From Isurus oxyrinchus (lineage: Eukaryota), in the NCBI GenBank assembly GCA_026770705.1, contig JANJGN010000007.1:109926001-109990000 (forward strand): a DNA stretch of 64,000 bases, read 5' to 3'. This document shows, piece after piece, positions 12,533 through 64,000 of the stretch. The translations under genes and the position numbers were made by a program. Below the pieces are notes generated by a model, which did not search any database, was not told the DNA's origin, and saw nothing but the letters and a program-made list of their open reading frames with translations. Each line of letters starts with the position of its first letter. The first letter of the stretch is position 1.

Positions 12533-12587
12533 ATGTCGATGGAAGTTACAGTTCAGTAAATGACTCTTCTGGGCATGGTTTGGCCAG
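12533..12587 (+). pseudogene. Type-A leader exon (MSMEVTVQ*MTLLGMVWP)
   Basis: 55-nt exon ending CCAG|GTACC; TAA at 12557-12559 where the paralog has TAC. Confidence 0.8.
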
Positions 12588-12795
12588 GTACCTTTGGTTT
12601 ATATGCTGCCGGCTTCAGAATCGCTAATCCTAATGTAATTGATCCTACAAATTGTACGCATTTTAAAAGTCGACACTGTGCCACTCTAATTCGACTGCTG
12701 GTGTTTCATAATGAATCTTATATTTTACTTCTCTTAGTTATTCTTCTTTATCTAATGCTTGCAGTGCTATTACCGTCGTGTTAATTTTTTGATAG

Positions 12796-13105
12796 CCGCC
12801 AGAGTAACTTCGAACAAAGTGGAATAGTTCCCGAAATATTTGAAGGTGCCCAGAGGTGCGAATATTTCCATGTTCTGCAGGCTCCTCATATCTCAAGGTC
12901 TTCCCGATGTTCGTTGGTGGAGACGCGGTGAGGAATCCTTTCTGGAACCAGTTAACAGAAAACGATTTGATGTTAAAAAAAAAAGCTAGTAGTTCGTTTG
13001 ACGTCCTGAATGTGACCTTTACAGATTCCGGGATGTATTATTGCAAAGTTAAGCATGGGCAAAATGTTTATGGAAATGGAGCAGGCGCCCAGTTCACTGT
13101 GCACG
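12796..13105 (+). pseudogene. Type-A germline-joined VJ exon
   Basis: KVE*FPKYLKVPRGANISMFC...DVRWWR...FDVLNVTFTDSGMYYCKVKHGQNVYGNGAGAQFTVH|gt; TAG at 12825-12827; frameshift in the A10 run 12975-12984. Confidence 0.92.
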
Positions 13106-15554
13106 GTAGGTGTTCTTGTAAGTGGGAGGGTTACAACTCTGTGCGAAACCTGTCATTTGAGCTTTTTTTTATCACTGGAGGAAAACCTGGTGATACCGAA
13201 TTCCTTTTACTCATCATCGGGTTTTCTTCCACTGACCTCGGTATACAATGGACATCGTAGATTTGAAATTAAACAATGGAATAATATGATCAAAACACAG
13301 AAAATGTCGGAAATATTCAGGAGGTCAGGGAGCCTCTGTGGAGACAAGCAGAGTTAGCGTTTCATGTCGATAATCATAATCGATCCGAAAAATTAATTCC
13401 GTTTCTCTACACAGGTGTTGCCCATCCTGCTGAATATTTCCAGCATTTTCTGTTTGTATTTCAGGCTTCCAGTATCTGTAGTATTTTGCGTTTAGGTTGC
13501 AAAAGGATAAAATAGTTCAATCTCAGCAAAATAACGGTGCCACAGTGCAACAATGGAAGCGACTTTAACCCCTACTAGGTCGTCACTTACACAACATTAA
13601 AGATCACTTAATTCACCTCAACAAGGAAGGAATATTCTCGGTGTGTTGGGTAATACCCGCAGATGGAACTACGAGGAGAAACTACCCTCATTGAGCTAAT
13701 TGCAAAGAGAAAGGAGATGTCAATGATAGTAAGACTGGTTATTCATGATATTCAGCTTGCTGCAGGTTCCAGTTTACGAATCCGCTCTGTGTCGAGTTAG
13801 CTGATCGAAATCAAGAAGGACTCCTGTGCCTCACCGCCATCCAATGCCATCCATTGGAGCTGTACGAGCCTACGGTAACAATAACAGGGAATGGGCTGTA
13901 ACTGACATCGAATCAAAGGTCAGAAGCCTCGGGTTCCTTTGCCAATAACATTAAATCCCTGTCTTCTGGTTACCGATTCTTGTCTTAATGGTTTCTCCTT
14001 GTTTACTGAATCAGAACGTTTCATAACTTTGAAAGTCGCTATCAAGCCTCCTCTTAACCTTCTCAGCTCTCAGGGGAACAAGCGTAGCTTCTCCGCTCAT
14101 TGCACATAATCCAGTCCCGTAACCCTGGTAAATCTCCAGCAAATCTTTTTTGCAACTTCTCTAAGTGTCTTCACTATAAATTTACCACAGCGACGAATAT
14201 TTCGCAATCGAGGTACCTTTTTCTGTCTACTGCTCGAAATTGCCGATCTAACATTTTGTATACTGGAATGACCGAAATTTGAAGTGGCTAGATTTTTGCT
14301 AGGCATAGGTACCAAGGAAATATAATTAAGTCGGACAAATGGTGTTGAGGTAGAGATCAACCATAATCTAAATGAATGGCAGGGGAAGTTGTGGAGGGGG
14401 GGCGGGGTGCTGAATGGACATCCTGTTCTTAAGTCCACAGTTTATACGTTGTTCTTGATCGAAATGCCAAACTATTTCCACAAAGGAACACGGCAATTCC
14501 GTAAGAGGGGAGATGTTGATCTTGCCTGCAATGTTTGGTTCCACCCCAAGTCCCAGAACTTGCAGGACAATTAAGGAGCCCAATGCCCTTATTTGAATCT
14601 CTGGGGCACACCAATTCCAATCTCTCTGATGCACTCATAACTGGTAAAGTGGAGGCGGGAAACACAAAACATTTCTATAAACGTCTGGACTCCCGCATTT
14701 GTAATTCCTAATTTCCATCTTCACTCCCCATAGGCAGGCGGAAGTGAGTGCACGAGATCAAGGGAACACTGGCTTCTTTCTCCCCAGCGGGGATTCTGTC
14801 AACATTAATTCAATAATTTGCTATTGGTACAATAAAAGAAAAGAAAATGTGTAAGAATAATATAAGAAGATTGACTTTATTAAGAAAAAAAGAATGTAGC
14901 CTAATGCGGGACTTTACTTTCAATTATCAAGTGATTTTAGGTAGAGCGGGCAAATAGGTAGAAATGTTCACATCAAAAAATTGTAAATTTGGACTGTTAT
15001 AAGCCGAATCTTCTCCAGACAAAATGCCTTCAATGAAGTTGTGGAATGGCAAAACGCGAGAATCATGTACGGCATGCACTCTGGGTTAGGATTTCCTGTT
15101 CGGTTTCGGTCATCTGTACGGATGTTGTGATCTATACAGCCATAAATAATTATCAAAATAAATTATTACTTGGAGAGCTAAACACTGCAGCTCTCCGTGC
15201 CCCTCTGGAGAAAGACACTTTGGTGAAAAGTGCACGATAAATTCGGCAGGAATCTCACTCGGGGTCTGTGCTGCAAACCTTAAAGCCGCCCTAGGATCTG
15301 GCATTTCCATTGCAGTGACAATTGCTTTATGGTTGTGCGCCAGCCTGGGACATACTCCCTTACCTGGATCGATCGAAAGGACATCTGGCAAATTTTCTGT
15401 GCGCCGCATAACATTGTGTAAAATAAATGCAAACTCAAAGGGAAACACGAGACCGCAAGGATCACCCTTCTCACAGTATGAGGTTAAGAGCATTGCGAGG
15501 GTAGGCAACTGAAAATGTGCTCAATTCAAAAGGTATATTTCTTTCCTGTTAAAG

Positions 15555-15844
15555 TACCTCCAACACCACTGAAAATCGTTCCTGTTGAAGGGAACGACTT
15601 GTCTGAAACTCGAGTGTAAAACGGCTGCCTTTTACCCGGAGGATTTAAGAGTTTCCTGGCAAAGAGATGGTGTGGAAATTCTGACCGGAACAGAAACTGA
15701 AAAACGAGATCGTAGATGGACTCTACGAGGTCTCCAGTTCTTTGGATGAAGTACAGCCTGCCCGGAACACAGTCGTTTATACCTGTCTGGTGTGTCACGT
15801 CTCTCTTGAGGTGTCCGCCAGTGTCAGCTACACCATCAACCAAG
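15555..15844 (+). pseudogene. Type-A Ig C1-set exon
   Basis: VPPTPLKIVPVEG / LKLECKTAAFYPEDLRVSWQRDG / DGLYEVSSSL...YTCLVCHVSLEVSASVSYTINQ|gtgaga; two frameshifts; 290 nt. Confidence 0.9.
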
Positions 15845-16505
15845 GTGAGATTGGAAACAGCAGCGAGTGGGGTATATGCTGCAATCTCTATTTACCTATT
15901 AGACATGTAGCCGGACTGCTGTTCAAACTCGAGTATACAGGGTGAAGGTGGAGAGTATTTACTCTCACTGTCACATTAATAGGAATAAAATGAAACAATC
16001 AAGACGGTTTGTAGCTGGAGGGGGGAGAATATCTCCCTGAAAAGATCTGAGGGAGGTTGATATGTGAGCTGCTCAAAAACTGAAAGCTCATTCCTCGTCA
16101 CATTTTTGTCATATGAAACGAATTTAGGTTAAATGGATCGGTTTTAGCAGAGTCACTTCTATCTCCCGTATATTTAAATTTAATATATGAAAATATCATT
16201 GTGCGTATCAGTTTTCTCTGCACCTTGCCTTTAGCTGTTTCACCCATAGACTCAAAAATTCACGCGCTAAATATTTCCGCCTCTCCAACTCTCCTTTTAC
16301 ACACTCCCTGAACTCTACCTCCACCTGTCCGAATATCACTTTATGCGTCCTGATTTTGTTTGATAACGCTGCTGTGAAGTGCGTTTAAGCGTTTTGCTAC
16401 GTTAAATGCAAGGTATTCTTGTTACCTCCTGAAAATTGCAAAGGTATCCTTTGGTAAGACTGTTTATCAGTGTTGAAGAGTGGAAGATTTTGTCACTCTT
16501 TGCAG

Positions 16506-16538
16506 CCGATGCGCATCTGTCTGGTGTAGCACAGAAAG
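16506..16538 (+). pseudogene. Candidate 33-nt phase-1 micro-exon (ADAHLSGVAQK)
   Basis: tttgtcactctttgcag acceptor and AAAG|GTAAAA donor; frame-preserving. Confidence 0.5.
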
Positions 16539-17073
16539 GTAAAAGGTGTACGTGCCTTACTCTTAACAAACAACCCTCACGTCCAGAGAGAAGCTTCCTG
16601 CGTCTTTATCGATTTATTCCCTCCATAAATTGCGTTACTGGCTTCAGTTTATATTGTTTGGTACATATTATAATCCACGTGCGGCTACTGCCAATTTATG
16701 AAAGCCGTCGGTCCCCACTGAGATTAAGCGGTTACCCAAGAGACAGCTTTAGAGCTCGCCCTCCTGTGTCTGACACATAACTCCGTATATAAACCTCGCT
16801 GTGTTCGACAAGTTCTTATTTCAATCTTTTGTTGATCATGTAGGTATTGGTGTCAGTTTACGATGTAAAATGGCTTGCTGACTCTTTGTCACATGTCTTA
16901 CACTACCCCACACAAAGCAGTGTGCTCCATTGGATAGAGAGACACGACGAAGCACTTCAATTTTCAAGGTTCCTTCCTTTACACAGTAAAAGCGTTTAGC
17001 TTCGAAGTCGACTTATTGGTTTTGCTTGCACACTTATTCAGTTATTCAACGTGGATTTCTTCTCTTCCTTTAG

Positions 17074-17097
17074 GCGTTGAGAGAAATTTTGTGGAAG
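17074..17097 (+). pseudogene. Candidate 24-nt phase-1 micro-exon (GVERNFVE)
   Basis: tttcttctcttcctttag acceptor and GAAG|GTGATT donor; read-through would give GVERNFVEGD*. Confidence 0.5.
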
Positions 17098-17209
17098 GTG
17101 ATTAAAGTGAAGAGCCGATAGGGCGAAAATGTTCTTTATATTCCAAAAAGAGGGGTTCGCGGGTAACAGCAAGAAATATTGCAATCAGCCGAGAAGAATT
17201 TAATTAAGT

Positions 17210-17790
17210 TTCATAGAATCATAGAAATGAAGTTATTATGCCTGTCCCGCTTCTGTGAAAAAACTATCCAATTAGCCCAATTCCCCATCTTTACCCATAA
17301 CCCTTCTTTTTGTTTGTTCAAGAAAATCTCTAATTCGTTTTTTTAAAGTTTCCATTGAATCTGCTTCCTCCAACCTTTCAGGAAATGGGTTCCTGACCAC
17401 AACAACCGGCTACACATAAAAAAATCTCATCTTGTCCTGATTATTTTGCCAATTATCTTAATTAGCCGTCCCTTGGATACCAACCCAAACACCACTGAAA
17501 ACGCTTCCTACATATTTACTTTCCTCAAAACTTCTCACCATTTTCAACACGCCCATTATATTCCCTTTTATCTTTCTCTGCTCTGAGAACAATCAAAGGC
17601 TCTCTCGTCTCCCCAGCGTAACTGAAGTCCCTCATCCCTGGTACCATTCTAGCAAATATCCTTTGCAACGGCTCCCAAAAATGTTGTTCCCAGAATGGGA
17701 CCAAATGCACCAATGAGGCTTAACCAGTGATTTATAAAGTTACAGCATAAATTCATTCTTTTTGCACCCCATGCCCTTATTTAGAAGGCC
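17210..17790 (-). mobile_element. Old CR1 3' fragment
   Basis: catagaatcatagaa tail; minus ORF LQRIFARMVPGMRDFSY. Confidence 0.7.
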
Positions 17791-18169
17791 AGAATAAATG
17801 TGTATTTATTGAAACATACACGATTGATGGATACTGTTTCAACAATTTCAACAATTCGAGGTTCTTAGATGCCCAGTTGCTTAATTGACACATTGTGTTG
17901 CATAATCACATGTGTAGCGTAACTAGGAAGGTGCCTAGTTAAAAGTGTTGCAAAGAAAGAACATGGTAATAGTACAGGGTAAAGATATCGGTCATGATAG
18001 CTGATGTGACAGAACTTAAAGTCAATTGGGTGCACCAGCAAATAAGTTCAGAGTAGGGAAAATGGTAAAGGGACAGAAGCAAGCACTCCGTATCTGAATG
18101 CAGCCAGCAGTTCTAACAAGGTAGATCGTTTGATGCTACACATAGGTGAGAAAGCATGTTCTGAGCAAG

Positions 18170-19990
18170 TCACAAAGAGAATGCCAAGGGATATAGATAG
18201 GTTATGTGAATGAGCAAGAATTTGGCAGATGGAGTATGATGTGAGAAAAGGTGAAGTTATCTTCTTTGGAAGGAAGAGAAGAAAAATAGAATATCATTTA
18301 AATGAAATGAAACTACAGAATACTGTGGTACAGAGGATTTAAGACAAAGGTGAGGAGGAATTTATTCTCTCAAAGGGTTATGAGGGATGGGGGGCTGGAA
18401 ACAGGAAAGTGTTGTTGAGGCCAGAATCAGATCAGCCATGATCTCGTTGAATGGTCTACTCCTACTCCTGCCTCTTATGACCTTGTCGTTAACCTTTGCA
18501 ATTTTGTACCCAGAGAACAATGGAGGCTGGGTAATTGAATATATTCAATGCTGAATTATACAGATTTTCATCTACACGAGTGCCAAGGGTGATTTTTGGT
18601 GTGGGGTAGTTGCGGTGGGTCAGATGGTGGAAGGCAAGAAATACAGAACCAGAAACAACTTACCCTATGCCACTGTCCAAGCTAGCACCAGGAAAAAAAG
18701 ATAAACCCCATTCTGCCAGAGTAGAACACGGTACAGCTGAGTTAATTCATTGAAGCCCTATCATTGTTAAGTGGTATGACGCTAATGTGTAGGAATTGGA
18801 AAGGTTCCAGTTTTAATAAACTAATTGGTTTTGTCAATTGATCTCAGCCAAGGTTCATCAGATTTGCCTCACGTCCGAGAACAGAAAGACCTGGGAGTAT
18901 ATGTGCATCAATCTTTGAAGGTGGCTGGGCAAGGTAAGTGGGTGGTTTGCAAAGCATGTGGGATCTTGGGCTTCATATATAGATACATTAAGTGCAAAAG
19001 CATGGAAGTCATGTTGAACCTTTATACAGATTTACTTTGACCACAGAATATTACATCCAGTTCTGGTCACAACACTGTAGGGTATGTGGGTCTTTCGGAG
19101 GCTGTAGAGATGATGTACCAGAATAGTTCCATGCGTGGGAGATTTTGGGGGGAGATTTGATGAAGGTGTACAAGATTATAACAGCTTTAGAGAAGGTAGA
19201 CAAAGAAAAACTGTTTCTATTAGCTTCTATTAGAGGTTTACAAGAATGTTGCCAGGGTTAGAAAAGTGTAGCTACGAGGAGAGATTGGATAGGTTGGGGT
19301 TATTTTCCTTAGGAAAAAGAAAGCTGAAAGGTGACTCGATTGAGGTGTACAAAAGTAAGAGGGGAATAGATAGAGTGGATAGGATAAAATTGTTTCCCTT
19401 GCTGGAGAATTTTGAACCAGGGGACATAGATTCAGGATAAGTGGCAGAAGGTGTAGGGGATACATGAGGAAGAACTTTTTTACACAGAGGATAGTGGGTG
19501 TCTGCAATCTGCTGCCCAAGTTGGTGGTTGAGGCAGAAACTCTAAACTCTTTTAAAAAGTATCTGGATCTGCACCTTAAGTGCTGTAAACTGCAGGGCGA
19601 TGGGCCAGGTGCAGGAAGGTGGGCTTAGAAAGGGCATCTGGGTGTCCTCGGGCTGGCATGGATAAGATGGGCCGAATGGCCTCCTTCTGTGCTGTAACTT
19701 TTCTATGCTTCTATGGTTCTAGCTGATGGTACAGGGACAGAGTTAAGGACAAGAGACACAGGGGAAATCTGAGGGGAAAATTTTCAAACCGTGTGTAGTA
19801 ATGACCCATAATTTGCTGCCCACCAGGGCGGTGGAAGCAGAGATCAATGATTTCAAAAGGAATTGGCATGGGCACTTCAAGTTTACTTCCTTGCAGGTTT
19901 ACAGAGATAGGAGTCGGGGAATGGAACTGACGGAATTGCTCCGTGGAAAGCCTTTAGACTGGGTGGGCTGTATACCCACCCTCTGAGCTT
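18170..19990 (+). mobile_element. Cluster of CR1 3' fragments, with a younger copy (~19235-19720) nested in an older one
   Basis: MLPGLEKCSYEERLDRLGLFSL; TTCTATG tail at ~19700; the host resumes gctgatggtac. Confidence 0.75.
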
Positions 19991-20127
19991 CCAGTGGACT
20001 CTGACTTTAAACTGAATTTGATAATTGATGAGAGAAAATTTCATTACAGCCTTTTTTTAAACCCTGATTGCCTCAAGCAACGAACTGACGATAAACTAAC
20101 AGGTGACATTAAATATTACTTTCACAG

Positions 20128-20306
20128 ATTAAAGAGGCAGGAATAGCAAGCTGATTTACGCCACTCTGCAGCTCACTGATTCCAATAAAACATCAAAATC
20201 TTGACAGGAAGATGAACATGTAGTGTACGCAAAAGTGAACATGACAAAGAAAAAGAGAAGCAGAGAATCGAAAAACAATCCAATGATGAGTTTTTTATGC
20301 GTGTAG
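20128..20306 (+). pseudogene. Type-A terminal cytoplasmic exon with two ITIMs
   Basis: tactttcacag acceptor, then D*RGRNSKLIYATLQLTDSNKTSKS*QEDEHVVYAKVNMTKKKRSRESKNNPMMSFLCV*; Tyr codons at 20157 and 20226. Confidence 0.75.
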
Positions 20307-31360: not shown

Positions 31361-31449
31361 ACTTTACACGTGATGTCACCAACTTCTGACACGTTTCTCG
31401 TCTGAGCTTTTGTAAACCCACATAATCCGACATATCGACTGTCACGTGC

Positions 31450-33474
31450 TTACATGCATTGATCCAATTGCTTTGTTTCTAAGTATATTGACCCTGGCGA
31501 TTGCACACACCGGTACAAGTGTTTATTTTAGGATTTACATCAGGTTTCTGATGGTGATTGGGGATTCCATTGTCGGACAAATACCCTGCCCTCAAATTTC
31601 CGCTCAAACGAACAAACATCACCTGATAGGGCATCTTCCCATTCTTTCAAGAGGAGTAAGGTGTAGAAGTTCTCTGGTGGAGACACGATAACCAGCAGCA
31701 CTTGAACAACGAGGAAGCGAAAAAGAGACAACATAATCTTCCATTAAAGGGGGGAGATTCCCTCTGCCTCTTGAATTCATGAATGTGAGATTCAAAGAGC
31801 CTGTCCGTTATTACTGCTACGTGTACTGTCGGGAAGGATAGTCGGGGATAGAACCGACTCAGAGATCCTTGCGCCTGTTGAGTCGCAGGTTCTGGATGTT
31901 GCAGGAGTCAATCGTGCAACAGGTACTTGGTAAAATTCCATCGAGATAGCGAAGAGTGTGGGAATGGGACACCTGTCCAGGTTTTTGTATTTACTGCCAG
32001 CATCAAACCAGCCTAGGAGTAAGATTACCGATTCATAGAGAAGCTTTTTTGCAAGTGTTTTTCTTTAATGTAGCCAGATATATATGTGTTAAAGTTTACA
32101 ATCTCATTGCTGTGAAAGCATAATCCATATCTTTTTTCAATAAAAGGTAACGGGATAAAAACGTCAATGAGACGAACTGCATTACCTTTTCAGAACCAAC
32201 TTAGCACATTGAGCAAATATATCCCTACATCGCATCGTTGTATGACACTGTAAACAGGTAAACTGCGATTCGGTAACCAAGGGGCTCGGATTTAAGAAAA
32301 ATTGGCAGAAGAACAACAAACGAGGGGAGAAGAAATTGTTTTACAAGGTAAATTGCTCTGATCTGGAATTCACTACATGGAAGCAGGAATAGTAATTTTC
32401 AAGGGGGAAATTGGATAGATACTTAGAAATAAAAGCATGGCTTTGGAGAAAGAGCAGGAAAGTGAAACTAATTGCACAGCTCTTTCAATGAGCCAATACA
32501 GGCAGTGTAGCCCGAATGGCCTCGCGGTATGCTCCATGATTCAGTAATTCTAGAATATACATTACTCTATTCAAGGCTCCATGTACTTTCTAGCTCCGTG
32601 TTAAATAATGACTGAAAACAAAGACAGTAAAAACGCTCCAATGAAACATGACGTTAAAGGGCCTGTCCTGAGCTTGTCTCTAAATTACAGACCGCAATAA
32701 TAAAATAATAATTAATATTTCAAAAGCAAAATCATTTTCTTCTCCTCCCAATGTTGTCCATTCATCTGAGCTTCGACCCGATTGAGTCTAAATTCTGTAC
32801 AGCCAGTTCACAGACTCTCCTGTGCAAAACAGCTCAGTTTTAACCTGAAGATCCCCATGTGACTCGATGTTAAGAACAAAGCGAAAACTGGAACCGGTGC
32901 CAATACTCCGAAGCAGCGAACCACGGTGTGAATCTACGAGCCTTCCAGCACTTTAAAACATGTGGCATTAACCAGCAATGAAGCTATATGCAGCTGCCAA
33001 GTATCTCATCTTTCTCTTCAGACTGCAACATTGTCACTTAGAAGGGTGAAGGTACGGACATTTTTGTTTCAGAAACTCTTGCTCGTTTGTCGTTTTTCTT
33101 AATACAAGGACGTCTGTGAACACGTTAGCATTTGACGCTCTTTTTTCCTTCGTTATATTCAGGGTTTATTGGTTCGATTGTAATTTTTTTTAACTTGGCA
33201 TTTATTTCAAGATTTTTAAAACATATCTGTATTTGTGTTAAATAGTCATTAGACGATTTGCTCTGATCCCGTATATCCCTTTGGTTTTCTTGTTGGTGCT
33301 GATTTTATTGATATTACGCCTGTCGGCCTTATATCTCTGCTGCTCGTTGGTTGCAGTCGCTGCTAACGTCGTTTTCCTCTATTTGGCATTCGGCATTTAG
33401 TGGGAATATTGGGTATAATGGTGCTAAGTGGCAACGCTGGGCTCTATTTGAAGCTGAGGTACTGCCAAAAATGA
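31450..33474 (+). pseudogene. Type-B VJ-C1-TM short-tail receptor pseudogene, copy 1
   Basis: V ~31545-31877 (KYPALKFPLKRTNIT**GIFPFFQEE*GVEVLWWRHD...EFMNVRFKEPVRYYC...IVGDRTDSEIL, donor TTGAGT); C1 32752-33051 (LLCKTAQF*PED...IYEPSSTL...SCQVSHLSLQT); TM 33357-33474 ending YLKLRYCQK*; AATAAA at ~33528. Confidence 0.8.
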
Positions 33475-33849
33475 GAGACGCCTTTATTACCAGAGCGAAT
33501 CATCACTTTAAAAGATGAAACTTTTGCAATAAATCCGCAAATAAAGTCGCGCTAACCGATAGGAAATGAACATCAATGTTCTTTGAAGGTGGACACGTAG
33601 ACCACGGTTTACACATTGAAAGTAATGAGATATCATCACGGAAAATAGCTGATGCACAGTTCCGACCATTGTTACTCAGGGCGAGCAATATCTTGCAGGA
33701 GACAGCGACCTCCTCTGGTCGATCTGGAGCAGCGACGTTTCGAAGACGTTTGGAGGATTTCCATGTTCTAGGGAAATGGTGGAAGTGTTTAAAAGAAGCA
33801 ATATAGCATTTCACTAAAAAAGCAGCCAGGCGAAATTATTCTCCGTTAT

Positions 33850-34250: not shown

Positions 34251-36769
34251 AAATTAATATAAATGTGGAAAGAAAGGTAAAGCTCAGGGGAGACTATATT
34301 CGAGGTTTTGGAATAATGAAAGGGTTTGTTATGGTTGATCCAGAGAAAATGTGTCCACTCGTGATGAAATCCAGAACGATAGGGCAGAAAAAGTCATAAA
34401 TAAACCCAACAGAGAATTCGTGAGAAGTTTCTGCACCCAGTAAGTGGTAAGAAAGTGGAGCACGCTAGAGAAAGGGATAAATGAGGAGAAAAGCAGTGGC
34501 ACATTTAGGGGGGAAGGTAGATATGCAAATGAGGCAAAAAATATGCAGATAGGGATAGAGAAAGAGATGGGGTAGGAGCATAAATACCAGCATATTATCA
34601 TCTGGGCCGAGTAGCCTGCTCTTGTGCTGTAGGTTCCCACAAGCAATAATTACAGATAATCATTTTAAGCGATATTGGAGGAAGGATAAATGTTGTGTAG
34701 AGGGAGAACTCCTCGTTCTCCTCCGACCTTCTGACTCACAGGGAGAGTGCTACAACTGAGCTAAGGTTGACACATGTATGTTACCATCATTAATTAATTC
34801 CAAATGGTATGCAGCTTGAGCTGCCAGCTCTCCCTAATAGAGTCATCGTGATTATACCTAGTTGATTCCAATGCGCTGGCTTCAAAGACTGATGTTGCTG
34901 TTGTTCTCCCCACTCTTTGAATAGGTGATGCTCATGAGTCCGGAGCCAAGCTGTAACAACCCTGGTGTCATCTGTCACAATCATTTGTGCAAATGTTTCC
35001 AAATACTTCATGCATAGGCATTAAAAATATCTAAACATAAAATAATTTTTCATTATTCTAACAGGATTTGACTTTCACATACAGCAAATGCTTTCAGCCT
35101 CCAAATGAAGGAAAATTGTGAAATATGGAAAACTATTTTACTTACATACAGAAAAGAGTTGTTTACACTAATTGTATTACTCGATTGTGTAAAAACAAAA
35201 GTTCTTAAACTAATATGTACTCAGCCATACTCTCTATAATTTCGCTGTGGTCTTACAAGTGCAACTTGACCCTAAAGCAGAGGTATCCTCCAAATTCCCG
35301 ATGCACCAAGCAGCAAAACCCGCAGAACTCATAAAACATTCAAACAGCCTCGGACATCGTAAACCTTTCTAGTTTAACTTCCAGAAATAGTTTGCCATTA
35401 ATACGGTAAAGCCCACGTACACTGAAAAGCATCTATCTTTTTCTCTCTGTGTTAGTCTCCCTCCTTTGTTTCAACAAAAGTAAAATGGCTCCCGACTGAC
35501 GACAGCACCAACCCTGGTGGATGAATTCCACACTCAATCTGTATAAGGATACATTTGATGTGTGGCACAGAAACAGTGCATTCGATCCAAACAGCTCATG
35601 CCAGTGTTTATGCCCAACTCAAGCCTCCTCCCATTTCTCATTTAAGTATACTATTGTAACCAGTATTGCCCTCTTCCTCAAATGTTTGTCTGGCTTCCCA
35701 TTAGATTCATCCACTCAGCAGCTATCCCTCGTTTAGCACATGTGGTGTTCTTAATAAACAGCGTGCTAAACGAAAATGTACTAAACAAAAGTCACTTTCC
35801 CATTGGAAAACATATAATAAAGATGGCTTACAGTTTTGACCTGTCATTTTTACTTCAAAAACCTATGAGCTGCCTAACTGGCCCAAGATTCTCCTAATAA
35901 CATGCTATCTGTTCATAACTCGTTACCTCCTTATATCTTACTAGCCCCGCCTCTCTATTTCCCGCTCACAGCTTCCCCCGGCTGTCCTGCTTGCTACCTC
36001 ACTTGTCTTTCCCTCTCGCACTCCCTCCCCTGACACTCCCACTCACCCCTTCTCTCTCCGACCTTCCCAGTTGCCAACGCCCCTTGTTGCCATTCCTCTC
36101 TTCCAACCTTCCCGTTCGCCTCTTCCCTCTCCTGCCCCTTTCACTCACCGCTTCCCGTCTCTCCCATTTGTCGCCTCTCCGGACCTTCCTCTTTGTTGCT
36201 TCTCCCTCCCTCCCATTAACCGCTTCTCCCAACATTCCCGCTCGCTACCTCTCCTGACTCTCCCACTGGCTGCTTCTCCCTCGTGACCCTTCCCCCTCAC
36301 TGCTGTCCTCTCCCGTCCGTCCCACTCGCTGCTTCTCCTTCCGTTCCGCTCACCGTTTTCCTCTCAGGACCATCTCGCTCGTCGCTTCCCGTCACCACCC
36401 CCCAACTTCTTTCCCCCTCCTTGCCTCCCACTCGCTGCCCTCTCATTCCCTCGCTCATTCCTCTTGCTCCCCTTCCTCTGGGCCTCAGTCACAGCGATGA
36501 CCAGCCAGGCAGCGAGTGGGAAGCAGCAAGGATTCAGGAGAGAGGAGCGGTGAGTGGGAGGGAGCAGGAGGGTCGGGACAGGGGTGGCGATTGGGAGGGT
36601 TGGCGAGCAAAGCAGAGGTTTGTTTAAAAAGTCTGAGCATGCACAGAAACTCCACATTTATCCCACTCTTTGGATGAAGAAATTTCTCTCCCTCGTATCA
36701 AACTGCGTCCTTTGCTGAGCACTGAATGTTCAGCATCAGAGGGGGGAAGGTCAGAGGGTGCCGTGTTCT

Positions 36770-41335: not shown

Positions 41336-41359
41336 ATGACCTATCCCCAAGCATGACCC

Positions 41360-42419: not shown

Positions 42420-44376
42420 ACTTGCATTGATTCAATTGCTTTGTTTCTATGTATACTGACCCTGGGGATTAAACACGAGAGTGCAGATGTTTATTCTAGT
42501 GTCTACGTTAGCTTTCTGATGGTGATTGGGGATTCCGCAGTCGGCCAAATACCCTGCCCTCAAATTTCCGCTCAAACGAACAAACATCACTTGATAGGGC
42601 ATCTTCCCATTCTTTCAAGAGGAGTCAGGTGTGGAGGTTCACTGGTGGCGACACGATAACCAGGAGCACTTAGACGACGAGGAAGCGAAAAAGAGACAAT
42701 ATAATCTTCCATTAAAGGGGGGACACGCCCTCTGCCTCTTGAATTCTTGAATGTGAGATTCAAAGAATCTGTCCTCTATTACTACTATGTGTACAGTCGG
42801 GAAGGATAGTCGGGGATAGAACCGGCTCAGAGATCCTTGCGCCTGTTGAGTCGCAGGGTCTGGATATTGCAGGAGTCAATCGTGCAACAAGTACTTGGCG
42901 AAATTCCATCGATATAGCGAAGAGTGTGGGAATGGGACATCTGCCCAGGTTCTTATATTTAGTGCCAGCAGCAAACCAGCCTAGGGCTAAGATTATGGAC
43001 TTACAGGGAAGCTTGATTGCAAGTGTTTTTTCTTTAATGTAGCCGGTTATATATTTGTTAAAGTTTACAATTTCGTTACTGTGGAAGCATGATCCATACT
43101 TTTTTTAAAGGTAAGTGAATAAAAACGCCAATAAGGCGAACTAGATTACTTTTTCGGGGCCAATTTAGCACACTGAGTAAATGCATTCCTACACTGCAAA
43201 GTAGTATGACTCTAACCAGGTAAACTATGATTCGATAACCAACGGGTCCAGATTTACGAACATTGACTAAAGAACAACAGGAATTTCCTGCCTGGAAACA
43301 GCAATAGTAATTTTCGGGGGTGGGGGGGTGTAGGTGGAATTGGATAGATACTACCAAATAAATTCAGGGCTTTGCAGAAAGAGCTGTAGAGTGAGGTTAA
43401 TTGCATTGTTCTTTCAAAGAGCCAATACAGACACTATGGGCTGAATGCTCCATGACTCAGGACATATATCAATTTTCTTTCTCTTTTTAAGAGTCCATAT
43501 AATTTCTAGTTCATGTTCAATAACGCTTGAAGACGCAGAAGTTAAAAACGCTCCAATAAAACACCACGTTAAAGGACCTGTCCTAAAATTATGTTTTAAA
43601 TTACAGGCTACAGAAATAAAATAATAATTAATATTTCAAAATCAAAATCATTTTCTTTTCCTCCCAATTTTTTTCATTCTTCTGATTGAGTCTAAATTCT
43701 GTCCAGCCATTTCACCAACTCCACTGCGCAAATCAGTTGTTTTACCCTGAAGATCTCAGTGTAACTCCAGTTTAGGAACCATGCGACAATTAGAACAGGG
43801 ACCAACACTCCGAAGCAACGAACCACGGTGGGAATGTACGAGCCTTCCAGCACTTTAAGGTATACGGCATCAACCAGCAGTGGAGCTGCATACAGCTGCC
43901 AAGAGTGTCATCTTTCTCTTCAGACTCCAACATTGTCAATTAGAAATGTGAATGTAAGGTCATTTTTTTTTCAAAAACTCTTGCTCGTTTGTCGCCTCTC
44001 TTAATACAAGGGCGTTTGTGAATGCATGTTAGCATTTGGCGCTGTTGCATTCCTTTGTCACATTATGGATTTAATGCTTCAATCGCATTTTGTTATTTGT
44101 TGGCATTTATTTGAATATTTTTAAAACATCTGTGTTTGTATTAAATGTCGATTAAACGATTTGTTCTGATCCTGTGTGTCCCTTTGGTTTTTTTGTTGGT
44201 GCTGGTTTTATTGATATTACGAATGTTGGCCTTACATCTCTGCAACTCTTTGTTTGCATGCGCTTCTAACGTCGTTGTCGTCTCTTTGACGTTCGGATTT
44301 ACTGGGTAGATTGGTAATAATGGCGCTGATTGGTTTCGTTGGGGATTATTTGAAGCTGAGGTGCTGCCAAAGGTGA
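42420..44376 (+). pseudogene. Type-B VJ-C1-TM short-tail receptor pseudogene, copy 2
   Basis: V ~42515-42845 (GIFPFFQEESGVEVHWWRHD...EFLNVRFKESVLYYYYV...IVGDRTGSEIL); C1 ~43668-43953 (FYPEDLSVT...GMYEPSSTL...AYSCQECHLSLQTP); TM ~44260-44376 ending YLKLRCCQR*; AATAAA at ~44429. Confidence 0.8.
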
Positions 44377-45549
44377 GAAGCACCTTTATTACCAGAACGC
44401 AGCGTCGCTTTGAAGATCAAACTTTTGCAATAAATCTGCAAACAAAGTCGCGCTAACCGATAGGGGATGAAAATGAATGTTCTTAAATGATGGACATTTG
44501 GATCACACTTCACACATTGAAAGTAATGAGATATTCTCCCGGGAAATAGCTGATGCACAGTTCCGACAATTGTTGCTCCAGACAAGCAGTATCTTGCGAG
44601 AGACAACGACCTCCTCTGGAGTAGCAACATTGCGAATTTATTTGGGGAGTTACCATGTTGTGGGGAAATGGTGGAAGCAATTTTTAAAAAGCCATATAAG
44701 ATTGCACCAGAAAGGGCAGCCAGACAAAATTTTTCTAAGTTATTGCACGAGCGTAAAATGCCAACCGCCTCGATAACAGGCTAATGATTTGTTTTTTTAC
44801 ATCCTTCACGGTCACCAGAATTGCCAGAGCGCTTTGCAGTCAACATTTGAAGTAAGGTCATTGTTTTGATTAGGAAACGTCACTGAAAACTGCGCACAGC
44901 AAATCCACAAATTAGCAACGTGATTATTAGCAGATAACCAGTGTTTTTGCGTGGTCTTGATTGAGTGATGGAACGATTCGATCATTGAAATTATGAAAGA
45001 GCTTGATATGGTTGATCCAGAGAAAATGTGTTCACTCGTGATGGAATCCATTTCTACAGGGCAGAAATGGATAGTCATAAATTAATCCAATAGGTAATTC
45101 GTGAGAAGATTTTATACCCAGTAAGTGGTAAGAATGTGGAGTATGCGAGAGAAACGGGTAACTGAGGAGAATAGACTACACAAGTTTAAAGGGGAAGATT
45201 GATATACATATGAGGCAGGAAGAAATATGCAGATTGGGATAGAAGAAGAGGACGGAGAAGCATAAATGCCAGCATATATCAGCTGGGCCGAATAGCCTAT
45301 TTTGTGCTGTAGGCTCTATGCATTTGTATGCAATGTAGAACAGAACATGTTAGAAACACTTGATGAGAAAAATAAGTTAACGGTTCAGTCATAGCCCTTC
45401 ATCAGAACTGGAAAAATGAAGAGGAAATCACAAATGACACAGATGTTTATATCATGTCTTAAAAGTAGAAAGACGTACTGAAATGTTTCCAAAGAACTAA
45501 CCAAAAAGAAAAATACACCCAGTCAAATAAATCGTATTAAAAGGGAGGA

Positions 45550-51830: not shown

Positions 51831-51869
51831 AGGGAGAGCGTCGACGAGAGGGATTCTTGTGATGAATAC

Positions 51870-53520: not shown

Positions 53521-53699
53521 ATATTTCTGATCTCATCCTTTACGGGGTGAACTGCCCAGCCTTTTAGTTATGGCAGCTACAGTTAAAATGGTGATAGTTG
53601 TTTTGCTCATCAAGACTATTGAAAAAATATGCATCGCATATGGAGGGTGAAAAAACATAATTTGAAAAGGAGGAAAAATGTCTTTTCAAAGTTTGGGAA

Positions 53700-58659: not shown

Positions 58660-59620
58660 TTTTTTTATTCATTCATGGGTTGTGGGCTTCGCTGGCTGGG
58701 CCAGCATTTATTGCCCATCACTAGTTGCCCTTGAGACGGTGGTGGTGAGCTGCCTTGTTGAACTGCAGCAATCCATGTGGTGTAGATAAACCCACAGTGT
58801 TGTTAGGGAGGGAGTTCCAGGATCTTGACCAAGTGACAGTGAAGGAACAGCAATATATTTCCAAGTTGAGATGGTGGATAACTTGGAGGGGAATTTCCAA
58901 GTGGTTGTGTCCCCATGTATCTGCTGCCTTTGTCCTTCTAGGTGGTAGTGGTCGTGTGTATGGAAGGTGCTGTCTCAGGAGCTTTGGTGAATCCCTGCAG
59001 TGCATCTTCTCGATGGTATACACTGCTGCTGCAGTGTGTCGGTGGTGGAGGGAGTGAATGTTTGTGGATGGGGTGCAATCAAGAGGGCTGCTTTGACCTG
59101 GATGGTGTCAAGCTTCTTGAGTGTTGTGGGAGCTACTCTCATCCAGGCAAGTGGAGAGTATTCCATCGCACTCCTGACTTGTGCCTTGTAGATGGTGTTC
59201 AGGCTTTGGGGAGTGAGCAGGTGGCTTATTCGTCACAGGATTCATAGCCTCTGACCTGCTCTAGTACCTATGTCTAGTTCAGTTCAGTTTCTGATCAATG
59301 GTAATCCTCAGGATGTTGACAGTGGGAGAATCTGTGTCAGTAATGCTGTTGAACATCAACAGGTGATGGTTAGATTCTCTCTTGTTGGAGATGATCATTG
59401 CCTGACACTTGTGTGGTGTGAATATTACTTGCCACTTGTCAGCCAAAACCTGGACATTGTCCAGGTTTTGCGGCATTTGGACATTAACTGCTTCAATATC
59501 TGAGGAGTCACGAATGGTGCTGAACATTGTGCAATCAAGAGCGAACATCCCCACTTCTGACCTTATGATGGAAGGAAGGTCATTGGTGAAGCAGCTGAAT
59601 TTAGTGAGCCGAGGCCACTA
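58660..59620 (-). mobile_element. HER1-like LINE 3' fragment
   Basis: MEYSPLAWMRVAPTTLKKLDTIQ, ADKWQVIFTPHKCQAM; gggcaataaatgctggcccagccagcgaagccc tail. Confidence 0.8.
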
Positions 59621-60902
59621 CCATGAGGAACCTATGAGCTGCCTTGAACCCTAACTGGCCCGAAGATCCTCCTAATAACACTATTAATAACGTTAGTAAA
59701 TTGTTCATTCTTAATAACTTATGAATCCTCTTTATTTCCTGCTCACACCTTCCCGACTCTCCTGCTTGCCATCTTTCTTGCTTTTCCTGCTCTCCGCTTC
59801 CCCCCGCCGCTCCCACTCACAGCTTCTCTCTCCCAGCCATCCGTAAACAGCGGGAGTGTAAAAGAATCCTGAGGGTTATTGCTGGCGACTCGAAAGAAAC
59901 GGTGCTTGTACCGTTCGTGTTAATGCAGGCCTAGTAACCTGGCTGCTTACAGTCAATTCACGTTATCCGGGCACTGCTATTTACCCACCTGTACCGAAAC
60001 GCCGCTTCATTGCAGGTTTTGAGGATAGCGACAGCGGGACCAGCTAATATCAACTGGAAATTTCGTGCGTCCTGAGACAGCAACTGGGAAAGAGAAACAT
60101 ACCGTAGAAACGCCACATAAGTAGCTTTTATTTAAACATTACTCACCATTAAATCTCTTCTTGGGAGTTTTTTTTTTCATTGATTTATCAATTACATTAC
60201 TGATCTCACTATACGACAAAGAGATACATTTTATTTTGGGGTTAGCAATAATAAGCTCAACTAATGTAAACACTTTAACATTTGCAGCTCGTCGCGTGTC
60301 ACGCAACAAATTTAAGGTATAAATTGTTGGGTTACAGACCAGGCATTATTCCACTGAATGGCAAAACCTACTGGGAGAGCCCAAAGAGTCCTTTGACCTT
60401 AAGCATTACATGAGAGATGACACATGGTGGAATCTTCAAGAATACATCAAAATAGATTTGCCGACCCTCCTGTGACTCATGACTCTTCCTACGGATGCCG
60501 AGGCCTCATTAATGTACTTCCAATATTTGACATTTAATTTCATTCCCAACATTCATAATTTTATTTTCATTAATCCAAATCTTTTGTTGATGTGATATCA
60601 GTGATCTCTCGCGTATACTTATCCCCTTTACTGGTTATTAACTCACTGCAAGTGTTTCTACTGGAAAATGTCATGCACCTTTTTCTTCCCGCTCAGAATT
60701 TCAGTAGCAGTCACGAGATCACAAACAACTGTGCAATTCAATCGGATCGGATCTGGAGCTGCACCCCTGTTCAAGTGATGACCATCAACAATTCTTTTTC
60801 GAGTTATCCATTATAAACCCCTGCGGAATAACAGATTTGTAACTCTTTCAGAGTCACAAACAATTAAACTAAATTAACTAAATGAGGGATAAATAACAGG
60901 TT

Positions 60903-60995
60903 TGTAACTCTTTCGAGTACAAACCCGTTTCTATCTGTTTCAGATGAAGTTACATTGTTTCATAGTTTTGCTATTGTGAGATTTGAACTCTTGAT
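60903..60995 (-). mobile_element. 5'-truncated tRNA-Thr-derived SINE (copy A)
   Basis: Matches the 3' ~93 bp of copies B and C. Confidence 0.75.
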
Positions 60996-61240
60996 AATCT
61001 TTTAAATGAAAACCAAATCAACAAAATCGGGATAAATCAGGCACAGCCCCTAATTCAGGTCAGCTGTAAAACCAAGAACAAAGTTTAAAGGAAACTTACA
61101 AACTTTAAATCAAAATGTGATTAAAGGGGTCAACAAAACACCCCAGTCCCCGCGGTGCCCACGGAAGGCCTCGAGAGTGCCAGCAGACACCGCGTGCTCC
61201 CTCTCGAGGGACATCCGGCAGCGAATGTAGCCGCGGATAA
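60996..61240 (-). mobile_element. Tx1-clade LINE 3' end
   Basis: Minus translation RGYIRCRMSLEREHAVSAGTLEAFR / APRGLGCFVDPFNHILI* resembles the Tx1 ORF2 C-terminus; followed by a T-rich UTR. Confidence 0.6.
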
Positions 61241-61262
61241 TGATCCGGGGTGACATCGGTCT

Positions 61263-61409
61263 TGTAACTCTTTCGAGTACAAACCTGTTTCCATCTGTTC
61301 CTATTCAGATGAAGTGACATTGTTTCATAGTTTGCCATTGTGAGATTTAAACTCTTGATTTTGGGGTTACAAACCCAGTACCATAACCACTTGGCTATTT
61401 AGGCCAAGC
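61263..61409 (-). mobile_element. tRNA-Thr(UGU)-derived short SINE (copy B)
   Basis: Minus: GCTTGGCCTAAATAGCCAAGTGGTTATGGTACTGGGTTTGTAACCCCAAAATCAAGAGTTTAAATCTCAC...; A box, TTTGTAA anticodon loop, B-box-like; 3' end CGAAAGAGTTACA. Confidence 0.75.
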
Positions 61410-61420
61410 CATAGCAGGTT

Positions 61421-61562
61421 TGTAACTCTTTCGAGTACAAACCCGTTTCCATCTGTTTCAGATGAAGTTACATTGTTTCATAGTTTGCCATTGTGAGATT
61501 TGAACTCTTAATCTTGGGGTTACAAACCCAGTACCATAACCACTTGGCTATTCAGGCCAAGC
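61421..61562 (-). mobile_element. tRNA-Thr(UGU)-derived short SINE (copy C)
   Basis: Tandem with copy B; GAGTTCAAATC B box; flanked by ATA(G/A)CAGGTTTGTA. Confidence 0.75.
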
Positions 61563-62019
61563 CATAACAGGTTTGTATATAGGCTCAAAGCGCTGGCCAA
61601 TTATTGGATTCAATAAGGGAGGACAGTTGAGGTGGACAACTATCCTTCACTAATCAAGCAGCTACCACAAGTTCGCTCCTTCAGAACAGGCCCGAGCAAG
61701 TGGGAATACTACACGTTCTATTTCCTCACACAAAGAGTGATTTTGCGTTGGCTGTTACCGAAAGACAGCGGCAAGCGCAGGTTAATTGCATAGCTAAGCG
61801 CCCCATGGCTCTAATTAGTTCAGATGTCAGCTCACTTATATTTGTGTTTACTAAACACCTGCCGCCTTTCCTACCCTTCCTAAAGATGGAACTGTGAGGA
61901 GGAACTGAGAGAATAGCTCACATTTTACTGATTGCAAAGAGAAAGGAGATTTCGGTGAAAGTAAAGACCTCGGGGCGTTCGCACAATTTTTGGTGGTGTT
62001 AGGACAAATGAGGAGGCTG

Positions 62020-62400
62020 TTAAAAACAGAGGGGATACTTCATTTTATTGATGAAGACACAGGGTACGGTAAGGAAATTATTTTAAACTTTTATAAAGCA
62101 CCAGTTCAGCCTCAGCTGGAATGCTTTCTTCAAATCTGAAGGATGTCAGGGACTTGGAGAGGGTGCAGAAAAGATTTGCTGAAGGTTCGCCTGGTTTAAG
62201 GGTCTTGGGTTATGTGGAGAGATTGGAGAAGCTACAGTTGTTCTCCTTAGAGTCGAGAATATTAAGAGGAGGCTTGATAGCGACTTTCAAAGTTATGAAC
62301 AGTATTGATTAAAGAAATTAGGAGAAACTGTTCCCAGTGACACAAGAGTCCTTAACCAGAAGATAGAGATTTAAGGTGATTGGTAAAAGAAACCGAGGCA
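62020..62400 (+). mobile_element. Old CR1 3' fragment
   Basis: KDVRDLERVQKRF...YVERLEKLQLFSLE; shorter paralog at 11650-11800. Confidence 0.7.
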
Positions 62401-63480
62401 TCTAACATTTGGCTGGAAGTTAGTTGCGTGTAGCCCCGTCCTGTTGTTGCCATCGGTTCGTACAGCTTAAATGGACGGCGGTGAGGAGCAGAAATCCTGA
62501 TTGATTTTTGCCTCCTGATTTAGATAAGCTAACTCGGCACACAGCGGATTTGGAAACAGGAACCTGCAACACGCTGAATGCAGTGAATAATCAGTCTTAC
62601 TTTCATTGATATCTCTTTTCTCTTTGCAACCAGCTTGCTTTAGTTAGTCCAAATGCAGGTTTCACCCAACACACCGCGAAAATTCCTTCCGAAGAATAAT
62701 TATATTCGACTGGAAATTTTACTTCGGTTTCTATCTCTATAGATACTGCTGGACCTGCTGATTTTTCCAGGACTTTCTGCCTTTATTTCAGATCGTCAGT
62801 ATCCCCAGTATTTTGCTTTTATTATTCGCGAATATTCCTTATTGCATTTCAGGCCTGCTGGACGAATAACTGTAACATTGAAAGGTGTAGATGTAGAACC
62901 AACATTTCATCTCTGGTATGGTGAAGGTAAAATTGTCCTCAACAGCTCTGGGATGAAAAAAGGACGATGAGCAGGATTATTAATCTAAATTGCTGTTGCA
63001 GTGAGCTGTAACTATTCCGATGAGTGGAGGCTGGTTGGGGTCTCGATCTAAATATATAAATAAGAACTAAGTATTGGCACATTCACATTGTCTATGCTCC
63101 TACATGAAGTCGGATGCCTTCGGTGAAGTGCTGGAGGACTGCCTGCGCCTGCGGCCTACATCTTTAGTTTCAGTATAGAGTGAAGTATCAAAGGTAGGTG
63201 TTGACAAAGGTGTTGATTGGAACGAAGTGCCCCGGGAGCGGCTGAGAAAACATTACCCTTCACGTGAAGGCTTTTCAATCAGCAGTTAAGGGGTGATCTT
63301 CAATTTCCTAGACTCCACCACGGTAGAATAAACAGACCCAATACGCTGCGTTAGTCATGTGATCTCCATATCGTGGTCATACGTTTCACATATTTACCTA
63401 TGAAATAAAGTTCTTACCCAAGCCACTGGTGATATCATTCTCACTGACAGCAATTTGGCAACTAACTTTTTATTTGCAAT

Positions 63481-63535
63481 ATGTCGATACAAGCTACAGT
63501 TCAGTACATGACTCTTCTGCGCATGGTTTGGCCAG
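63481..63535 (+). CDS. Type-A receptor copy 2, leader exon (MSIQATVQYMTLLRMVWP)
   Basis: Open 55-nt phase-1 exon, CCAG|GTACC donor; paralog of 12533-12587. Confidence 0.75.
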
Positions 63536-63736
63536 GTACCTTTGGTTTTTATATGCTACCGGTTTCAGAATAGCAAATCGTAATTAAATTATTCTACAAC
63601 TGTTACGCATTGTAAAATTGCATCCTGTTCCTCTCAAATTCGACTGTTGGCAATTCATAATGGATCTTATATTTTACATCTTTGCTTGTTTTTCTTTATC
63701 TATTGTATGCACTGTCTTCTTCATTTTTTTTGATAG

Positions 63737-64000
63737 CTGCTGGAGCAACTTCGAACAAACTGGAGCAGTTCCCTAAAGACTTGGACGTGACCAGTGGCGC
63801 GAATGTTTCCATATTCTGCAGATTTCCCATATTTCAAGGTTTTCCTGATGTTCGTTGGTGGAAACGCGACGAGGAAACCTTTCTGGAACCAGATAGCAGA
63901 AAGCGAGTTGATGTAAAAAAAGGAAGTAGTTCGTTTGACATCCTGAATGTGACTTTTACAGACTCCGGGGTGTATTATTGCAAAGTAAGGCATAGGCAAA
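63737..64000 (+). CDS. Type-A receptor copy 2, V exon (partial; open to the window end)
   Basis: tttttttgatag acceptor; AAGATSNKLEQFPKDLDVTSGANVSIFCRFPIFQGFPDVRWWKRDEETFLEPDSRKRVDVKKGSSSFDILNVTFTDSGVYYCKVRHRQ with no stop; canonical Cys-Trp-DxGxYxC; two N-glycosylation sequons. Confidence 0.85.

Follow-up and report, generated by a model that had tools for sequence, protein, structure and literature searches.

The window, i.e. the whole 64,000-nucleotide stretch of Isurus oxyrinchus DNA analyzed here, probably represents (about 80% on the sequence evidence) the decaying part of a tandem array. The genes of this array would belong to a multigene, non-rearranging family of Ig-light-chain-like VJ-C1 membrane receptors that is spread across Chondrichthyes and whose closest named relative is SIRP. 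The sequence-only reading of the window had proposed a cluster of VJ-C1 receptors, and this cluster is real: in tblastn searches, the Ig exons resemble intact shark proteins much more closely than chance would allow. As a correction to that reading, nearly all copies of the two gene types, A and B, in this window are pseudogenes.

Organization of the window

Besides the receptor cluster, the window contains only repeats. Self-BLAST reveals three old duplication units (about 2-13 kb, 29.5-40.5 kb and 41.3-64 kb) that share 74-82% DNA identity, confirming the claim of a tandem duplication cluster. The gene pair of a unit consists of one type A and one type B gene; in both, a single exon encodes the V domain together with its J-like GxG strand, and a C1-set exon follows. 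Copies have met different fates in the different units, i.e. loss, truncation or decay, as found in tandem arrays subject to gene birth and death. DNA contigs from the source organism match the window across the pseudogene of type A, including its frameshift at 15697. The putative RNA runs cover only repeats. These old pseudogenes reveal an A-B unit older than the local duplications, with B the first of the two to die.

Type A genes

The first type A copy (12533-20306, plus strand like all features described here) accumulates four in-frame stops and three frameshifts. Its leader exon (12533..12587), directly followed by a GT donor, is interrupted by an in-frame TAA (12557-12559) and translates as MSMEVTVQ*MTLLGMVWP, versus MSIQATVQYMTLLRMVWP in the second copy. 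The V+J-like exon (12796..13105) carries a TAG (12825-12827) and a frameshift near 12980. Its J-like strand, YGNGAGAQFTV, is encoded in the same uninterrupted exon as V and precedes a phase 1 GT donor at 13106. No RSS heptamer adjoins any V end in the window, and the lone CACTGTG, at 13095, sits inside the J-like coding sequence of this copy. Hence, the V and J-like segments are germline-joined, as had been claimed. The 3' piece of the exon matches positions 74-109 of the Pfam V-set model, and the V pieces score 8e-34 in tblastn against intact shark proteins.

The C1-set exon of the same pseudogene (15555..15844), delimited by splice sites read from the DNA, is shifted in frame twice (near 15595, at 15697), and its tblastn matches are spread over three frames (about 6e-27 against intact shark proteins). 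It retains the YTCLVCH motif, and its first part, a half-exon, matches Pfam C1-set at 1.5e-04. No TM exon is detectable within 12533-20306. The last cytoplasmic exon (20128..20306), interrupted by two stops (TAA, 20130; TGA, 20202), bears out the proposed dual ITIM of type A, also found as ITIM tails in relatives: LIYATL (20151-20168) precedes the TGA and VVYAKV (20220-20237) follows it. Positions 20133-20261 of this exon match in tblastn at 4.6e-07, with 53% identity to the C-terminal exon of the Heterodontus protein P0151.

The second copy is the sole open gene copy in the window, where it is visible only to the middle of its V exon. The leader exon (63481..63535; GT donor at 63536) matches residues 1-19 of P0151 in tblastn. 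The V exon (63737..64000) is open to the window end, its J-like strand, C1 domain, TM and tail lying beyond. It matches P0151 with a tblastn E of 8.5e-37 and 67% identity (63736-63999), and Pfam assigns it to I-set (1.4e-09) and to V-set (1.2e-06).

Type B genes

In unit 1, type B is reduced to a 5' remnant of the V exon (3757..3930), truncated downstream, in a region that aligns to 31.4 kb and 42.4 kb. This remnant matches residues 1-56 of Heterodontus P0184 (tblastn E 1.8e-04), two stops replacing FYC. Type B exons span 31.5-33.5 kb in unit 2 and 42.5-44.3 kb in unit 3. Both of their V+J-like exons are dead. That of unit 2 (31545..31990) has TGATAG (31624-31629) and frameshifts, and about 125 additional bases separate its YYC from GNGT. 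That of unit 3 (42520..42960) repeats these frame changes and has its TGATAG at 42592-42597. The C1-like exons are also dead. In unit 2 (32740..33047), stops and a frameshift have accumulated, the CQVSH motif is kept and one piece has 59% identity to P0184 residues 171-221. In unit 3 (43690..43945), a frameshift lies near 43766 and the identity to residues 170-222 is 58%.

The hydrophobic last-exon region of unit 2 (33245..33474) has two competing readings: a 51-aa hydrophobic stretch in frame 1 (33245-33397), or a TM-like stretch followed by KLRYCQK and TGA in frame 0 (33367-33474). AATAAA signals lie downstream at 33528 and 33540. Searches with family relatives favored neither reading. The end ascribed to type B (a TM, a tail of about 7 aa, a stop and AATAAA) is recovered in frame 0 of the unit 2 copy only, and homology did not confirm it. 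The corresponding region of unit 3 (44145..44306; AATAAA at 44429) shows 90% DNA identity to that of unit 2.

Since the TGATAG double stop, located at the expected first Ig cysteine, is common to all three type B copies, type B had died before the triplication. An ancestral pair, type B followed by type A, would have been copied three times with B already dead. Unit 2 would afterwards have lost its type A, whereas that of unit 1 would have decayed. In unit 3, where the gene extends past the window, type A may survive.

Intact relatives in cartilaginous fishes

HMMER searches against 1.84 billion proteins retrieved relatives that match the window genes in a single stretch with 39-68% identity. 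Intact members occur in at least 15 chondrichthyan species of both subclasses, and both ITIM-bearing and short-tailed homologues are found in many sharks, in rays and in one chimaera. RefSeq models come from Heterodontus, Scyliorhinus, Narcine, Mobula, Mustelus, Heptranchias, Carcharodon, Pristis, Hypanus, Callorhinchus, Cetorhinus, Rhincodon, Hemiscyllium and Chiloscyllium. In living members, the leader precedes a short V domain that includes the J-type GxG strand, then come a single C1-set domain, a TM and one of two endings: either tyrosine motifs of the ITIM/ITSM-like kind recur along a long tail, or a short tail follows a different TM. In the long-tailed relatives, one to three [SIVLT]xYxx[ILV] motifs are present. 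The short-tailed TM form reads R, a hydrophobic run and (D/E)H, e.g. RLVLGFLVILGLLGIIVDH; neither a lysine inside the TM nor a basic TM residue of the SIRP-beta/KIR type is found in the short-tailed members examined.

The family tree splits into two clades (support 97/100), and in both of them ITIM-tailed members interleave with members carrying the short-tail-type TM. Scyliorhinus P0163 and P0164 have ectodomains about 95% identical to the end of C1 and are unrelated from the TM on. This pattern agrees with the proposal of paired receptors; however, types A and B themselves are not the inhibitory and short-tailed forms of one receptor but two old clades. Judging by their motifs, the long-tailed forms would be inhibitory receptors that recruit SH2 phosphatases upon tyrosine phosphorylation, and the short-tailed forms, with nearly identical ectodomains, would be their activating or decoy counterparts. 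The family may have diversified by gene birth and death and by exon exchange.

The best matches of the window type A and type B are P0151 and P0184, respectively, and their RefSeq accession numbers are consecutive. By this accession order, A-like and B-like genes apparently lie side by side in Heterodontus, as they do in each unit of the window. Such gene pairing could mirror a germline-encoded, TCR-like heterodimer of an A chain with a B chain. Ig and TCR dimerize through their GxG J-type strand and C1 domain, and most ITIM-type TMs start with a conserved Cys (motif GCAGG). Nevertheless, A lived on although each of the three units inherited a B that was dead before the triplication, which argues against an obligate partnership, and complete ITIM receptors exist in both clades. 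We therefore consider such a heterodimer very unlikely.

Domain structure and relationship to SIRP

The second domain had been proposed to be C1-set, not C2 or I-set, and intact relatives establish this: Pfam C1-set matches range from 2e-14 to 3e-08 and beat C2-set models. Among the relatives tested, 5/5 exceed the Pfam C1-set cut-off (2.1e-14 to 4.4e-08). The family members examined have a single C1-set domain between V and TM. The first domain is short, with 54 residues between cysteines, and Pfam scores it about equally as V-set and I-set, the V-set match covering model positions 1-109. Thus, the antigen-receptor-like character claimed for the domains stands for C1 and is weaker than claimed for the first domain. 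J-like strands of the relatives read IGDGSGSQLTV or similar. The AlphaFold2 ectodomain model (pLDDT above 90) has no strand between residues 62 and 73, in the C'-C'' region. Foldseek matches it best to Fab light chains (about 220 columns, E about 2e-15). A PDB profile search with the family retrieved Ig chains (about 1e-24 for light chains), UrIg2 (9dmx; 7.5e-35), SIRP-alpha (2.3e-29) and SIRP-gamma (4.5e-25).

These genes could simply be SIRP orthologues (SIRP-alpha-like and SIRP-beta-like) in cartilaginous fishes, with nothing new beyond their annotation. RefSeq most often assigns SIRP-type names ('tyrosine-protein phosphatase non-receptor type substrate 1-like' and 'signal-regulatory protein beta/gamma-like'), and the best non-titin PDB match of P0151 is human SIRP-alpha (2wng; E 1.4e-10). 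The layout is also shared: one exon encodes the N-terminal V-type domain including the J-like strand, a C1-set domain comes next, the genes are clustered, and multi-ITIM inhibitory members occur next to short-tailed members with closely similar ectodomains. Furthermore, the tails have repeated 'xTYAxL ... xEYAxI/V' pairs similar to those of SIRP-alpha.

However, mammalian SIRPs are V-C1-C1 whereas the shark family has one C1. The first domain of the family is shorter and I-set-like, the V domain of SIRP-alpha having about 66 residues between cysteines. Activating SIRP members have a TM lysine, a basic residue that pairs with DAP12, whereas the shark short-tailed TM lacks it and is flanked by R and (D/E)H. 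The shark family is also much more expanded, with two old clades, and SIRP fits its profile no better than Ig chains and UrIg2 do. Moreover, the RefSeq names are automatic and inconsistent, with at least five unrelated ones. Because they also include B7H6-like, tapasin-related-like, Ig-lambda-like and TCR-beta-like, the SIRP name amounts to a weak best match. SIRP orthology is possible but, in our opinion, doubtful. That the genes form a large undescribed family across Chondrichthyes, a VJ-C1 lineage of its own that is distinct from SIRP, from UrIg and from rearranging antigen receptors and not orthologous to SIRP, is likewise a tentative proposal. Our literature searches found no paper on the family.

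Comparison with antigen receptors and other VJ-C1 genes

Ig light chains share with the family the two-domain VJ-C1 fold seen in the Foldseek and profile matches. Unlike light chains, the family has neither a V-J split nor RSS, its V domain is shorter and it carries a TM and a signaling tail. The sequence-only reading had linked the genes to the pre-RAG receptor ancestor, which is speculation. On this idea, the family could be a direct relic of the pre-RAG antigen-receptor precursor, and SIRP and other VJ-C1 genes would then be more distant from Ig/TCR than it is. A single VJ exon without RSS followed by a C1 domain, the light-chain fold matches, the strong profile matches to Ig chains and UrIg2 and the presence in both chondrichthyan subclasses would agree with it. 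However, any V-C1 protein is expected to give light-chain-like fold matches, the V domain is too short for C'-C'' strands, and an ITIM signaling tail is typical of innate paired receptors. UrIg and UrIg2 have already been proposed as better candidates (PMC12227049, PMC10751288). Direct descent from the precursor is hence improbable.

UrIg and UrIg2 resemble the family in being non-rearranging genes with a single-exon VJ and C1 in elasmobranchs (PMC12227049, PMC10751288), and UrIg2 (9dmx) is among the best profile matches. UrIg nevertheless is antibody-like (V-C1-C2-C3, with an Fc-like dimer) and encoded by few genes, whereas the family members are V-C1-TM proteins with ITIM or short tails and are encoded by many genes per genome. 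PRARP (2019, cited in PMC10751288) can be likened to the family by description, as PMC11599192 presents it as IgSF genes that do not rearrange and whose VJ domain is already joined. Tandem birth/death arrays with many pseudogenes, and ITIM and short-tailed forms with near-identical ectodomains, are also known from the KIR, LILR, NITR, PILR and CD300 clusters; unlike the shark genes, these use V-only, C2 or I-type domains and no C1.

Genes combining a single-exon VJ with C1 are actively sought as clues to the origin of Ig and TCR (PMC12227049), and NKp30 and UrIg/UrIg2 are the only shark VJ-C1 genes discussed in the literature that we found. The present data show that cartilaginous fishes possess numerous VJ-C1 genes of the paired ITIM/short-tail receptor type as well. 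If these genes do form a separate lineage, they would provide independent and abundant data for reconstructing VJ-C1 genes as they were before the RAG transposon split one. The window alone is of lower value, consisting mainly of old pseudogenes. UrIg has been reported from elasmobranchs only (PMC12227049), and the family described here is also present in Callorhinchus, in which one model (P0175) resembles two fused V-C1 units.

Relatives in sharks, rays and chimaera

The receptor genes of the window belong to a family of non-rearranging VJ-C1 membrane receptors that have ITIM-tailed and short-tailed forms. The observation made by the sequence-only reading is real and its interpretation right in outline, and the genes within the window are nearly all dead. 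Exons were searched singly and as frame pieces. When the open V exon of type A copy 2 was used as query against 1.84 billion proteins, about 20 single-stretch matches were found (39-68% identity over 130-420 residues), giant multi-Ig proteins aside. Look-ups and two further searches identified the matched proteins as RefSeq models, their sources being sharks, rays and the chimaera Callorhinchus. The genes lie several per species on one chromosome-sized record and bear automatic, inconsistent RefSeq names (SHPS-1/SIRP-like, B7H6-like, tapasin-related-like, Ig lambda-like, TCR beta-like). Furthermore, several isoforms are predicted at many of these loci, which may reflect transcript support, as is probably usual for such models. 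The ESM Atlas gave nothing beyond generic V-C1, B7 and butyrophilin-like clusters. The tail of one relative, P0177 (residues 262-368), used as sole query, matched only chondrichthyan proteins, a result that is uninformative on SIRP since the method needs shared words.

Domain architecture and fold

The family alignment gives the order leader, first Ig domain, conserved VPPTPL linker, C1-set domain, TM and one of two endings. The first Ig domain has invariant Cys, Trp and DxGxYxC, plus a GxG...L.V strand, and the C1-set domain carries the motifs F.P, W and Y.C.V.H. The long ending contains repeated motifs like xxYAxL, TVYAQT, LTYAAL and xEYAE[IV]; the short ending sits behind another TM type, R-hydrophobic-(D/E)H. 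Pfam scores the second domain of the relatives clearly as C1-set, as had been claimed from the sequence. The likeness of the first domain to an antigen-receptor V was overstated: V-set and I-set score about equally, only 54 residues separate the cysteines, and the AlphaFold2 model of the Heterodontus protein P0151, with a pLDDT above 90 over both domains, has no strand at the C'-C'' position. In Foldseek, the top matches are Fab light chains, aligned across both domains. Compared with PDB sequences, the family profile matches Ig heavy and light chains, UrIg2 (7.5e-35), SIRP-alpha (2.3e-29) and SIRP-gamma (4.5e-25), and SIRP-alpha is the top match of a single-protein search, titin excepted.

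Some predicted isoforms (among the proteins P0158, P0110, P0140 and P0157) lack the TM exon, the C1 exon (giving V-TM-ITIM) or a tail exon. Those devoid of the TM exon are possibly soluble. If these partial isoforms are real, several receptor forms would come from each gene of the family.

Clades and pairing

When 37 ectodomains and the open V exon of the window are placed in a maximum-likelihood tree, two clades emerge, each with a support of 97/100. Clade 1, in which type A falls, contains elasmobranch sequences only. Callorhinchus falls in clade 2 together with Heterodontus P0184, a protein that type B matches far better than any other. ITIM tails occur in both clades, and so does the R...(D/E)H TM that accompanies short tails. 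Moreover, in two Scyliorhinus proteins, P0163 and P0164, the ectodomains share about 95% identity, and the sequences have no relation from the TM on. Near-identical ectodomains joined to unrelated TM and tails are the usual signature of paired receptors. Therefore, these receptors form a paired-type family, as proposed for the tandem cluster, but types A and B of the window are two old lineages and not the two halves of one pair. The consecutive accession numbers of the A-like P0151 (XP_067906043-46) and the B-like P0184 (XP_067906047-48) suggest that an intact A-B unit is present in horn shark. In addition, the Heterodontus protein P0161 combines a V domain resembling that of Heptranchias P0116 with a C1 domain, TM and tail that the P0151 group of clade 1 shares in nearly identical form, an example suggesting that V exons may be exchanged within the family.

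Comparison with known families and possible functions

SIRP is the closest named family. However, SIRPs have two C1 domains whereas the family described here has a single C1-set domain, and the activating SIRP partner has a TM lysine whereas the short-tailed TM found here is devoid of the usual one. Two defining SIRP features, C1 domain number and TM lysine, thus fail in this family. The non-rearranging VJ-C1 organization is also that of UrIg and UrIg2, but both of these are antibody-like genes. Known non-rearranging VJ genes are given as NKp30, PRARP and UrIg (PMC10751288, PMC12227049, PMC11599192), and these three papers do not mention the present family. A literature search of partial coverage found no publication on it, and an earlier description is possible.

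By analogy with SIRP, KIR, LILR and similar families, and from their motifs, long-tailed members are probably inhibitory receptors, whose tail tyrosines would become phosphorylated and recruit SH2-domain phosphatases. Short-tailed members, with a TM lacking the usual lysine, are probably activating or decoy counterparts. The family would have diversified by tandem duplication, decay and exon exchange. As for its link to the pre-RAG ancestor, it can be put forward as a hypothesis. The family merits naming, phylogenetic analysis and mapping.

Type A copies

In type A copy 2, a leader exon reading MSIQATVQYMTLLRMVWP extends from 63481 to the GT donor at 63536, and the V exon is open from 63737 through the final base of the window. 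Copy 1 has the same layout and is multiply broken: the leader (12533-12587) is interrupted by TAA at 12557, the V exon (12796-13105) by TAG at 12825 and a frameshift near 12980, the C1 exon (15555-15844) by frame changes near 15595 and at 15697, and the last exon (20128-20306) by TAA at 20130 and TGA at 20202. This last TGA separates LIYATL from VVYAKV, the two ITIMs that had been attributed to the type A tail and that are indeed present. A TM exon and middle cytoplasmic exons of copy 1 were sought between 15.85 and 20.13 kb by tblastn, by the family HMM run on all open stretches of 15850-20140 and by a motif scan; none was found, the best candidate (E 0.22 at about 18630) being unconvincing.

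At the 3' end of its V exon, copy 1 reads YGNGAGAQFTV, immediately followed by a phase-1 donor; hence, the J-like strand belongs to the V exon. In addition, the RSS search found no recombination-signal heptamer flanking any V end. These data bear out the description of the VJ exon as germline-joined and non-rearranging. In copy 1, a CACTGTG heptamer occurs at 13095, where the J-like strand is encoded (FTVH). The four V exons and the few hundred bases around them contain no other such heptamer, and this one most likely results from chance.

DNA contigs from the source organism match the window throughout the type A pseudogene, 15697 included. In a related organism, one DNA contig has two extra bases (TG) at 15697, which would undo one of the two frameshifts of the C1 exon. 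Hence, the 15697 lesion may postdate the divergence of the two organisms; alternatively, this contig may derive from a paralogue.

Type B copies

Type B is represented by two nearly full long copies (31545-33474, in unit 2, and 42520-44306) and by a 5' remnant (3757-3930). All three carry TGATAG at the expected position of the first Ig cysteine, and the two long copies change frame at identical places. Hence, type B was already dead when the unit was triplicated. Its C1-like exons retain F.PED..VT and C.V.H-type motifs, yet with stops and frameshifts. Furthermore, both long copies have about 125 extra bases (31836-31965 and 42804-42933) separating the V end (YYC.VYCREG) from the J-like GNGT, where the intact Heterodontus P0184 has just 8 residues. 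This segment is unique within the window, is 95% identical between its two copies and contains no RSS heptamer.

Type B had been described as ending in a TM, a short tail, a stop and AATAAA. Such an arrangement is seen in frame 0 of the unit 2 copy, with a TM-like stretch followed by KLRYCQK, then TGA, and AATAAA downstream at 33528 and 33540 (conserved at 44429). Frame 1 contains a 51-residue hydrophobic stretch. Neither reading of this last exon matches any family member, and the structure of the type B 3' end is uncertain.

Layout and repeats of the window

The sequence is free of N runs. Compared with itself, it contains three blocks that resemble one another (about 2-13 kb, 29.5-40.5 kb and 41.3-64 kb), with 66-87% DNA identity and with unrelated insertions breaking them up. 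No host genes other than Ig-type receptors were seen in it, and the long open stretches outside Ig exons mostly resemble reverse-transcriptase-bearing repeat fragments. By eye only, LINE reverse transcriptase-like open stretches lie among the receptor exons at 18.8-19.6, 23.2-24.2 (minus strand), 25.6-26.0 and 56.2-56.7 kb.

When four small runs guessed to be RNA were compared with 12500-18499, repeats alone were covered, which is neutral on expression, for or against. The segments 13300-13499 and 18300-18499 are also covered by such runs; their summed contig depth exceeds 100,000 in a DNA run of the source organism and reaches 24,000-140,000 in the related organism. These are very high-copy repeats, probably SINE-like. 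Low-complexity Pro/Ser/Leu-rich stretches with several frames open occur at 35900-36650 and 7650-8200 and are probably simple repeats; GC content is 0.53 at 36-38 kb.
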